In this document: piece after piece, positions 7,365 to 13,977 of the stretch
How positions within the stretch are numbered: the stretch's first letter is position 1
How the letters are laid out: every line of letters starts with the position of its first letter
Source: Dimorphilus gyrociliatus
Lineage: Eukaryota; Animalia; Annelida
Direction of reading: 5' to 3'
DNA: 64,000 nt
Assembly (NCBI GenBank): GCA_904063045.1
Contig: CAJFCJ010000007.1
Coordinates: 2,487,404-2,551,403, forward strand
Notes under the pieces: model-generated
Databases searched by the model: none
Seen by the model: the letters and a program-made list of their open reading frames with translations, nothing else
Told to the model about the DNA's origin: nothing
Translations under genes and position numbers: made by a program

Positions 7365-9130
7365 TCCTCTTTCTATGTCTACTCTCTATCACTTCCTGTT
7401 CATATCGTTTTACTAAGACTTTTTCGCATTTTACTATATGTACAAATTTCTATATCGATATTTATATAAGGAAATTTTTTTATACGTCCCTCTATAAATA
7501 TATATTAGTCAGTTGACATTCTATTCATATTCTCACTTAAAAGACTTGCTTATTCAACGGTTATTGTAGAAAAATTGCGCAAAAAGACGACGATTATTCC
7601 CATTATTTGCCGTGTAAAATTATCTATTCTTAGGCCTATCGAGTATGTAGTAAGAGTAAAGAAGAAAATAAAGGTAGGGGGAGTGGGGAGAGAGGGAAAG
7701 AAGGAAATTTTTTATGAACAAATCAAATAAATGGGCAAAAAGAAGTTGGTTTTGCATGTTGAACATGTGCTAGAAAGTTTTTATGCCCAATTCTCGTCTG
7801 ATCTAATCTTTGAAATCGACAAATAAACATTATATATGTACGATTTATTGATATAAGGCTAAGGTAGTGTTTTTTCTTTATGTAATAGTATAGCTGTTAA
7901 AGAAAGAAAATGTATAGAAGGCAAAAAAAACTAGTATATCAAGATAAGAAAATGCATTAGATGGCGCTATCTGAAAGTATAAGTGTGGTCTAGTTCCGGT
8001 TAGAGCGGGATAATAAGATTACGGAACGTAATAACGAACACACGCCCACGTATAGACTGACTGAGAATGCTGTGCACTTGAACGTCTGGAAGCTCTTAAT
8101 AATAGGAATAAAAATTTACATTTACATATCTTAAAACTCTTATCCATGTAAAGAAAATCAAAGAAGTTGGGAAAGAGGCTTTCTAGGTTCTACAAATCGA
8201 TCTACTAATTCCAGCTAATATGTTAGAAAATGCATTAGATCACAATCTGTTGTCTTAATCATAATTAATAATGGCAGCTATATAAAGTACATAATAATCT
8301 TGAAACAAATCGTTAACCAGTGTATTAGTTAATAAGTAAAAAAGTTTACGAATTGCTAATACGTACCATGTTTGTAGGCGTTGACTTCAATTTATCTCGC
8401 ACACTTCTATTCGAAAGATTTGGTTTATTTCTGTGTTCGACTCAGCTTGAAACTCGGGCGATTGGTGCAGGTGGCGTTCTATTCGAAAGAGGATGTTATT
8501 TTTTACGCACCGAAAAATTTGTAGGTTATATACTATAAACATATGGAAATGGTAATGAACTGTTAAATATTACTCGTTTTTAATCAAAACAAATATATAT
8601 ATAGATCGTAACTTGGCTCCTGGTTAGGAAAATAATAATAAATAAATATTTTTCTACAAAAGGTAAATAATATCATTTCCTTCAAAAAAAAAAAGTTGAA
8701 GCGCCGACCATCTACTGCTATCGCCATCTCTCGTCCATCACTTTCGAAGAACCTTAGGCACATTTAGGTATTATGTGCTTGTTTTGTTGGAAGATTGTCA
8801 AAAGAATGGAATAAAAGATGTAAGGCGAGATGGACAAGTACACGCGACACACCCTTGAAAACGACTAAGAAAGAAGCTTTTGAACTTTGAGGAAAATGCA
8901 TTCTGTAAAAAAAGTGTTGCATATTATGTCCTACATTGATTTGGTCGCTGTTTGTGTTATTATTATTTGTTTACACAATACATACAAACCTATGAACGGT
9001 TCTCATGGTAACTTATATAGTTTGTTGGAAAAATTTCCTAGATGGCGTGTTAGAACGTTGCTAAGTGGTCGCGGCGGCGGCGGCGGTTTATTGAGTCATG
9101 TTGCATTAAGAAAGGCGTTCGAACGGCAGC

Positions 9131-9333
9131 ATGGGCTGCTTGGGAAGTGGAAAAGATGATGAGAGCAAAGAGCAAGAGAATAAGAGCAAGTTGATTGAAA
9201 AGCAATTAGAAAAGGATAAACAAAAGTAAATTTGAATATCTTGGCTGAATCGATAGACTTTGTTTTAAAGCCAGTTAATGATTTTTTTCCCTTTCCAATA
9301 GGTACAAGGCGACTCATCGGCTGCTTTTATTAG
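9131..9333 (+). CDS. GNAS: G-alpha-s alternative N-terminus (exon 1A, split by a 76-nt intron)
   Basis: 9131-9225 + 9302-9333 translate to [42 protein letters not shown](G). Intron 9226-9301 is gtaaat...ccaatag. The unit ends at a phase-1 donor (g|gtacg), the same phase as exon 1B, so it can splice to 10258. Confidence 0.88.
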
Positions 9334-10029
9334 GTACGAACTGTTTTTTATCTACTTCTTAATGTTTTACCTTGTAAAAGTCGTATCGTATACTGCGTAT
9401 GCATGTATTATGTATAAATCTCTGACTTGAAAGCATTCGTATTGTAAGGAAGATTGATCATGGCTTAGCTGCTGTATGCTTTTTAAGTATAAACAGCAAT
9501 GAAATTATTATTGAATGAGGCGGATTATTTCGAGGCCTCTGTGCTTATTTTTAACCGCTATTCGGCCAAATTTTCCTCTCAACTTGTTTTTCGAATTTTT
9601 TGTCGTCGCTTCCCTAAAAATTTTTCGAACGGCCGTCAGATGGCGATGGTGACGGAAGTAAAATATATGTTATCGCAAGTGATTAAAATCCAATTGGATA
9701 ATTAATGAAGATGTGAGAAAAATAAATAAGATATTTATCGGTCAAAAGTGTGCGGATAATACGTAAATGAAAATGCAGCGAATCTTCTTATCACGTGACT
9801 CATTATGGCTAGCATTCCCAGAATGCACTTAACCGCACCCTGAGCCTTAGAAATTTTTGCGAAAATCAGTGATTGAATGCACGATAACAGAATTTATTCA
9901 AGTGGAAACTAAACTTTATGGATTGTTGAATCCCTCGGATAATTGCACAACTCAAAAGATACTGAAGTGGCGCGCGTAGAAAGGGCCGAAAGCGGTGGAG
10001 GCCGTCGTGCCAGCCTGCCTTTAAGGTCA

Positions 10030-13360: not shown

Positions 13361-13366
13361 AATAAA
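13361..13366 (+). terminator. Candidate poly(A) signal for G-alpha-s terminal exon A
   Basis: AATAAA about 220 nt after the exon A stop and upstream of the exon B acceptor. Confidence 0.4.
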
Positions 13367-13830
13367 AATTTTGACGAATTGTTGAAACCCGCTCTGTTTC
13401 CGCCTTGACGATCGAGTCGGCACCGTCCGCCGTCTTCTACATTTAAGTGTTTCTAACAAACAGTTTGTGTATATGCTCATTGATGTAACGCTTTGTATAA
13501 GTGTGATATATCTTGATTATAGTTAATTTGACGACCAGTTATTGTGGTTTCTATGTATAAATGGATTATATAATAATTCTATATGGCATCTGTAGGACTG
13601 CAGGTGCGCGTGCAATACACTGACAAGTTTCTTTATAAGACGTCACTTTCCAGGTGCCCCCCCCGCGAACGCACAAAAAAAAAGCAAAGGTTAAGTAACA
13701 AATACAGTATTCGTACGAATGTGTTGTCGAAATCGTTCAATTTAGTATTTTTTTTTTGATTTTTATCGGATGCTGTTAAAATTCCACTTCATATAGATTA
13801 GTACGTATATATGTTGCGTTTATTTCGCAG

Positions 13831-13977
13831 AAAATCAGCACATCGGCCAACGAGGAAGAGAAACGCTGTTACCCACACTTTACATGTGCCGTCGACACGC
13901 AGAATATCCGACGAGTCTTCAATGACTGTCAGATAATAATTCAAAGAATGTACCTGAAGCAGATGGGTCTTCTATGA
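13831..13977 (+). CDS. GNAS: G-alpha-s alternative terminal exon B (C-terminus [10 protein letters not shown])
   Basis: Acceptor tttcgcag at 13823-13830, then 147 nt in phase 0: [48 protein letters not shown]. Same length and phase as exon A (12997-13143); 33 of 48 residues identical by manual alignment. Confidence 0.9.

Follow-up and report, generated by a model that had tools for sequence, protein, structure and literature searches.

In the 64,000-nucleotide (nt) stretch of contig CAJFCJ010000007.1 of the annelid Dimorphilus gyrociliatus analyzed here (the window, whose positions serve as coordinates throughout), we find one Gs-class G-alpha gene, at 9131-13977 on the forward strand, whose otherwise single-copy coding region has alternative exons at both ends. 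Transcripts may begin with exon 1A or exon 1B and may end with exon A or exon B. The locus probably can make Gs proteins with different receptor-facing ends, of which only the ordinary combination, 1B with A, was seen in RNA. We favor, with moderate confidence, the explanation that a constant core is combined with the canonical ends 1B and A to give the usual Gs protein and with the ends 1A or B to give variants that would answer to an altered set of receptors. The exon model, which we rebuilt from the DNA sequence (Table 1), agrees with a preliminary description of this DNA in its outline of one locus with one shared core, in which the duplicated units are the exons for the N-terminal helix and hinge and those for the alpha4-beta6 loop, beta6 and alpha5.

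Every internal boundary of the exon model is of the GT-AG type. The first exon 1A of the preliminary description is a real coding unit, but it consists of two exons, 1A-a and 1A-b, split by an intron of 76 nt that has a strong pyrimidine tract. Exon 1A-a encodes most of the alternative N-terminal helix, and 9 of 10 residues are alike between 1A-b and the end of 1B. With 127 nt for 1A and 133 nt for 1B, each with a start codon of its own, both units end in phase 1, after ...HRLLLL and the first base of a Gly codon, so that either can be joined through a same-phase donor to the common exon 2, which encodes the P-loop. A second ATG in exon 1B stands in a better context and yields MGCF.... The shared exons 2-9 encode the P-loop, the helical domain, switches I-III and alpha4. 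At the 3´ end, exons A and B are 147 nt each, begin in phase 0 and reach their stop at the same codon position; the acceptor of A is good and that of B is strong, with a pyrimidine tract and CAG. All four combinations of ends are in frame, at 377-379 codons. When each exon was compared with positions 6000-16000 by tblastn, 1A and 1B emerged as one duplicated pair (E 2.5e-8) and A and B as another (E 2.6e-21), and no second copies of exons 2-9 were found by this local search. The proposal that the duplicated exons are the first and the last only, the eight middle ones being single-copy, therefore holds.

The gene belongs to the Gs class by several measures. Exons 8, 9, A and B match Pfam PF00503, a GAGESGKS-type P-loop is encoded in exon 2, and DVGGQR is found in exon 8. 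Among structure chains in the PDB, those of Gs and Golf rank top, with 97 bits for exon A (a match to human Gs) and 63 bits for exon B, and the relatives of the whole protein are all named G(s). Exon A carries the canonical Gs C-terminal tail, from which exon B differs at six positions of alpha5. The 77.9-Mb genome has no second Gs-class locus: its other G-alpha loci are at most 45% identical to exon B.

The isoform that joins 1B to A exists as messenger RNA (mRNA). Two database proteins of 399 amino acids, P0195 (Logan) and P0313 (JGI), contain exons 1B, 2-9 and A at 98-100% identity, with exon A at 100%, and the junction of 1B to exon 2 is present in both. Since the contigs that encode them are 2004 and 1356 nt long, compared with a genomic span of 3.1 kb from 1B to A, they represent spliced complementary DNA (cDNA), and 1B+A is a real product. 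In both proteins the reading frame continues upstream of the ATG and is colinear with the genome from ~9966, so that the acceptor at 9959 was not used in that transcript, which probably had its own start upstream of 1B. This colinearity of the 1B leader upstream of the annotated acceptor points to a separate, putative start site for 1B. As an aside on the protein collections, dozens of fragment proteins read ...QYELLW followed by junk, the Gs TGA stop having been read as Trp; these fragments are a collection artefact from a gene caller with a non-standard code and not biology.

The public gene model for the locus, CAD5117468.1 (DgyrCDS6234; P0311), has 225 amino acids and covers 9131-11645 of the window. 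It is composed of 1A-a and 1A-b, with the same junction residue, K, as in our exon model, after which donor 9333 is joined to the weak acceptor 9958|9959 and the frame runs on through the 1B leader and 1B. The model ends at a TAG that is present only with intron 5 retained, and we read it as a defective, shortened model of a core signalling gene. From the model it can nevertheless be seen that the 1A exons, with their small intron, passed the annotation pipeline.

The 1A-type N-terminus (pattern IEKQLEKD(K/R)Q.(Y/F)K.TH) recurred in 3 of about 120 Gs proteins from other animals. The carriers are isoform X2 of the ribbon worm Lineus longissimus, isoform X2 of the brachiopod Lingula anatina, and the full-length protein P0210, which is transcript-derived because it was called without introns. 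All three continue from the 1A-type N-terminus straight into the P-loop and end in a canonical tail. For both Lineus and Lingula, the RefSeq isoform X1 begins with the canonical 1B-type N-terminus instead and is otherwise identical to X2, and such a difference confined to the N-terminus is the signature of alternative first exons. A tree of the N-terminal exon, built on 47 columns, placed the 1B of D. gyrociliatus inside the canonical clade (Shimodaira-Hasegawa-like approximate likelihood ratio test, SH-aLRT, 89) and all four 1A-type sequences outside it. The tree thus separates the 1A types from the canonical clade, but it does not demonstrate that they form a single clade. Most simply read, these sequences mean that the 1A/1B arrangement was in place before annelids, nemerteans and brachiopods diverged. 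Given its presence in Lineus and Lingula, the first-exon pair is not an invention of the compact Dimorphilus genome, and the idea that the arrangement reflects the economy of a small genome is weakened by its occurrence in two other lophotrochozoan phyla. That annelid, nemertean and brachiopod Gs genes have the pair in common suggests that Gs regulation in Lophotrochozoa includes an old layer not yet described; we found no description of lophotrochozoan Gs first-exon isoforms in the literature.

Exon B is more divergent, and it is maintained by purifying selection. Exon A shares 94% identity with the last exon usual in invertebrates; exon B reaches 67-69% in comparison with A and with all other Gs tails seen. 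Between A and B, amino-acid identity is 69% (33 of 48 residues kept) and nucleotide identity 68%. The 46 differences among 144 bases are distributed 10/9/27 over the three codon positions (p 4e-4), and silent sites are saturated (proportion of silent differences, pS, 0.75) at a nonsynonymous divergence (dN) of 0.24. We ran 20,000 neutral simulations matched in the number of changes; on average 20 of the 48 residues stayed identical, and 29 at most, compared with the 33 observed, and frame and stop survived in 6.9% of the runs. Both exons, A as well as B, are under purifying selection. A degenerate DNA pattern for the B-type tail had no match in metagenome contigs, among which records near this genome are perhaps absent, and exon B appears from the sequences compared to be a lineage-restricted copy.

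The changes in exon B were mapped by alignment to residues 347-394 of human Gs. They fall in the alpha4-beta6 loop, at one residue of the beta6-alpha5 loop, and at alpha5 positions 380, 381, 387, 389, 391 and 392. Judged by receptor-Gs structures, the changed positions would be receptor-facing, and the core-packing residues would be unchanged. The tail encoded by B is YLKQMGLL, compared with HLRQYELL in A and NLKDCGLF in the worm's own Gi, and B shares L, K, G and L with this Gi tail; Lys at -6 and Gly at -3 are of the Gi type, here on a Gs body. A tail of this kind was also found in two proteins from Logan contigs of another organism, P0189 and P0447, which represent a divergent Gs-class C-terminal half ending in ...QRAYMQKMGLF. 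This tail shares five derived states with exon B, and a look-up of P0189 in the ESM Atlas gave 'G-alpha' only. A Gi-like tail on a Gs-type body is thus, from the ...YMQKMGLF ending of P0189, not unique in nature; the 48 residues compared fit kinship and convergence alike.

With regard to mechanism, transcripts that start upstream of 1B and end in A give the canonical Gs protein, as the cDNA-derived sequences show. A second promoter ~90 nt upstream of 1A would give transcripts in which 1A-a is spliced to 1A-b and then to exon 2, bypassing 1B, and in the resulting proteins an old alternative version would take the place of the N-terminal helix and the alphaN/beta1 hinge. If the acceptor and the poly(A) site of exon A were skipped, exon 9 could be spliced to exon B, which would alter the alpha4-beta6 loop and the receptor-facing side of alpha5, including the Gi-like Lys at -6 and Gly at -3. 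Every form contains the same switch regions and effector face and should therefore remain active on adenylyl cyclase. The N-terminus with the hinge and alpha5 are determinants of receptor selectivity according to chimera work (PMC8160216), so the variants should differ in the receptors that activate them; this work also bears out the earlier statement that the duplicated ends are the receptor-facing selectivity regions. Exon choice would swap exactly the parts that set receptor selectivity and leave the effector face untouched. A bolder version, in which the first-exon pair is ancestral to Gs (at least lophotrochozoan, conceivably homologous to vertebrate exon 1/XL) and exon B is a natural Gs/Gi tail chimera through which receptors for a small Gi-type tail would raise cyclic AMP rather than lower it in cells that choose B, seems unlikely to us. 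As for RNA pairing that might bear on exon choice, an intronic element at 9577-9601 that is complementary to 10093-10117 in 1B (25 nt, 84%), and more weakly to 1A-a, was rejected as chance, since 20 of 200 shuffles scored as high, and no convincing RNA pairing was found flanking exon A.

Several observations weigh against the explanation we favor. For this species, searches of 5.8 billion proteins and 1.84 billion representatives yielded neither an exon B protein nor one that joins 1A directly to exon 2, although this absence is weak evidence, as assembled contigs favor the major isoform and minor ones are easily missed; isoforms that are >90% identical may also hide in clusters, and mid-size fragments are partly covered in such protein searches. 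Exon A is seen in cDNA-derived proteins and B in no database protein. The 26-84 amino acid proteins (of the 5.8 billion) and the 1.84 billion representatives returned only canonical tails and no exon B, profile searches for full-length and half-length proteins of this species returned no B-containing protein, and besides P0195 and P0313 the searches returned no public protein that spans exons 6-9 together with A or B. The suggestion that the locus gives up to four G-alpha proteins stays a prediction: all four frames are open and the 1B+A mRNA exists, but RNA evidence was found neither for B nor for the joining of 1A to exon 2 in this species. In addition, the sole public model that uses 1A joins it to the weak 9959 acceptor and reads through 1B, and the tree of 47 columns allows a common origin of the 1A types without demonstrating it. 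An exon B orthologue was not seen in other animals, the B tail occurring in none of 446 fetched proteins. There is also no AATAAA or ATTAAA within 500 nt after exon B, only variant hexamers following it (AGTAAA at 14139, ATTAAA at 14480), and just 41 nt separate the exon B stop from that of a convergent gene, such that the 3´ untranslated regions of the two would overlap.

The missing B-tail transcript or protein, the missing poly(A) hexamers and the nearby convergent stop, together with the canonical tail carried by all 1A-type proteins of other species, are what one would see if exon B were a silent relic of an old exon duplication, with variation only at the 5´ end and all proteins ending in QYELL. 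We consider this somewhat unlikely, because 33 of 48 residues are unchanged in spite of saturated silent sites, a degree of identity that 0 of the 20,000 neutral simulations reached, and because the exon also retains its frame, its length, its stop position and a strong acceptor; a dead 147-nt frame would hardly last so long in a compacted genome. A different alternative concerns the 5´ end. The 9333>9959 junction occurs in exactly this form in CAD5117468.1 and the frame is open through the 1B leader, and so 1A might be added to 1B rather than take its place, the outcome being either a Gs protein whose N-terminal helix is doubled or a leader with a short frame that controls translation of 1B. 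When the 76-nt intron is retained, 1A-a stops after 32 codons, a possible upstream reading frame. However, the 9959 acceptor is almost without a pyrimidine tract, the supporting model is plainly defective in that it ends at the retained intron 5, and by our estimate an open frame over 24 codons arises by chance in ~1 in 3 cases. Exon 1A-b moreover keeps the beta1 residues and the phase of 1B, which is sensible only if it is joined to the P-loop exon 2, and Lineus, Lingula and P0210 join the 1A-type N-terminus straight to the P-loop. We therefore regard the addition of 1A to 1B as quite unlikely.

The preliminary description had also raised the possibility that promoter choice and 3´ end choice are coupled, the locus then working as two interleaved paralogues, one canonical (1B+A) and one divergent (1A+B). 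The canonical parts 1B and A do occur together in cDNA, the divergent parts form the outer pair of the gene, and P0189, as a divergent Gs-class protein with a B-like tail, shows a separate Gs lineage with such a tail. The relatives give this no support, however: in Lineus X2, Lingula X2 and P0210 a 1A-type start is followed by the canonical tail, and a B-type exon was found neither in those phyla nor elsewhere outside this genome. As the 1A type goes with a canonical tail in other phyla, 1A looks much older than B, with no joint origin, and we think coupling of the two ends very improbable. The explanation with alternative ends on a constant core remains the one we favor.

Both kinds of alternative exon are already known on their own, alternative Gs first exons from GNAS and GNAL and duplicated 3´ exons from GNAO and amphioxus preGNAS. 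The Dimorphilus locus unites first-exon and last-exon alternatives in one Gs gene and has, in addition, a much older, Gi-like alternative tail. Vertebrate GNAS and GNAL, which have alternative first exons (exon 1 versus XL), are similarly of the Gs class and have an upstream alternative first coding exon; in these genes it has its own promoter and is spliced to a common exon 2 (PMC5896119). The 3´ end of the XL exon resembles exon 1 (PMC5896119), as the end of 1A resembles that of 1B. Unlike 1A, which is the size of 1B and split by a small intron, XL is a very long extension in an imprinted locus, and it is apparently absent outside vertebrates (PMC5896119). XL and 1A share few residues only, and the tree of 47 columns leaves their homology undemonstrated. 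A parallel at the 5´ end is given by the X1 and X2 isoforms of Lineus longissimus and Lingula anatina, in which both N-terminal types recur in front of one and the same core, with the 1A diagnostic residues in X2; these are automatic predictions, and neither species shows a second tail.

At the 3´ end, exons 7-8 of GNAO1, which distinguish Go isoforms 1 and 2, are likewise duplicated 3´ exons for the receptor-contacting C-terminus behind a shared front (PMC5896119), but the gene is of the Go class, two exons are swapped instead of one, and the vertebrate gene has no alternative first exon. The final exons 12.2/13.2 of amphioxus preGNAS are also duplicated terminal exons of a Gs-class gene for which alpha5 diversity in receptor coupling has been proposed (PMC5896119). 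The amphioxus copies are young, with 80-81% amino-acid and 88-89% nucleotide identity and one added residue (PMC5896119), whereas A and B of Dimorphilus have diverged to 69% and 68% identity, silent sites being saturated, and Gi-like residues occupy -6 and -3 of B. The two terminal-exon duplications are independent. A further parallel comes from the laboratory, in G-alpha proteins built with the core of one class and the C-terminal residues of another, as exon B would be. Such engineered tail chimeras reportedly redirect receptors to another effector (Conklin et al. 1993), with Gly at -3 said to be a key Gi-type residue. They are constructs in which 3-5 residues are swapped, whereas exon B occurs in nature, still ends in the Leu-Leu of the Gs type, and has changes in the alpha4-beta6 loop and in the middle of alpha5 as well. 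If exon B is used, it would be a natural counterpart of these pharmacologists' chimeras, in an animal that would widen the receptor input of its single Gs, and the interest of the locus rests largely on whether it is used.

Table 1. Features of the Gs-class locus and of associated sequence elements, in window coordinates.
Feature	Position	Strand	Remarks
Exon 1A-a	9131-9225	+	Start codon with good Kozak context, MGC N-terminus; GT donor, phase 2
Exon 1A-b	9302-9333	+	32-nt mini-exon, hinge and beta1 strand; donor phase 1, like 1B
1B leader	9959-10029	+	Colinear with genome from ~9966 in cDNA-derived proteins
Exon 1B, coding part	10030-10162	+	Canonical Gs N-terminus; 100% match to P0195/P0313
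Exons 2-5	10258-10330, 10417-10471, 11342-11461, 11544-11641	+	Shared, single-copy
Exons 6-9	11979-12033, 12101-12174, 12243-12422, 12483-12684	+	Shared, single-copy
Last exon A	12997-13143	+	Canonical Gs tail ending QYELL, stop TAA
Last exon B	13831-13977	+	Divergent Gs-class tail ending KQMGLL, stop TGA
AATAAA poly(A) signal of exon A	13361-13366	+	218 nt after exon A stop
TAGATGGCG motif copy	9039-9047	+	84 nt upstream of 1A start codon
CAGATGGCG motif copy	9637-9645	+	385 nt upstream of 1B start codon
Third motif copy, TAGATGGCG	12227-12235	-	Intron 7, 8 nt before exon 8 acceptor

A YAGATGGCG motif had been noted before each first exon. Both copies do lie in the same orientation as the gene, but the motif is a genome-wide element rather than one peculiar to this gene: the window contains 9 copies (0.33 expected), and the 10-mer YAGATGGCGC is found 1439 times in the genome compared with 20 times for the reversed control, an excess of about 70-fold. 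The following C is present at 5 of the 10 AGATGGCG sites in the window and absent at the copies before 1A and 1B. A CTCF-like promoter motif has been published for D. gyrociliatus (PMC7854359), and we infer that YAGATGGCG corresponds to it. The copies before 1A and 1B are, on this basis, reasonable markers of two candidate promoters, and the third copy, in intron 7, may reflect an antisense or internal start site, or chance. Further YAGATGGCG copies in the window are at 7958, 16352, 26682, 27138, 46845 and 60716. Several of them are located in the gaps between neighbouring open reading frames or shortly before one, for example 67 nt upstream of the ATG at 46779 (reverse strand), and their placement fits a general promoter element.

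Two other features of the region were noted. Intron 3 harbors a (TA)n microsatellite, about 150 nt long, at 10600-10745. The convergent neighbour of the Gs gene, at 14018-16300 on the reverse strand, resembles PARP16, with a PARP catalytic-type motif and a hydrophobic C-terminal anchor.

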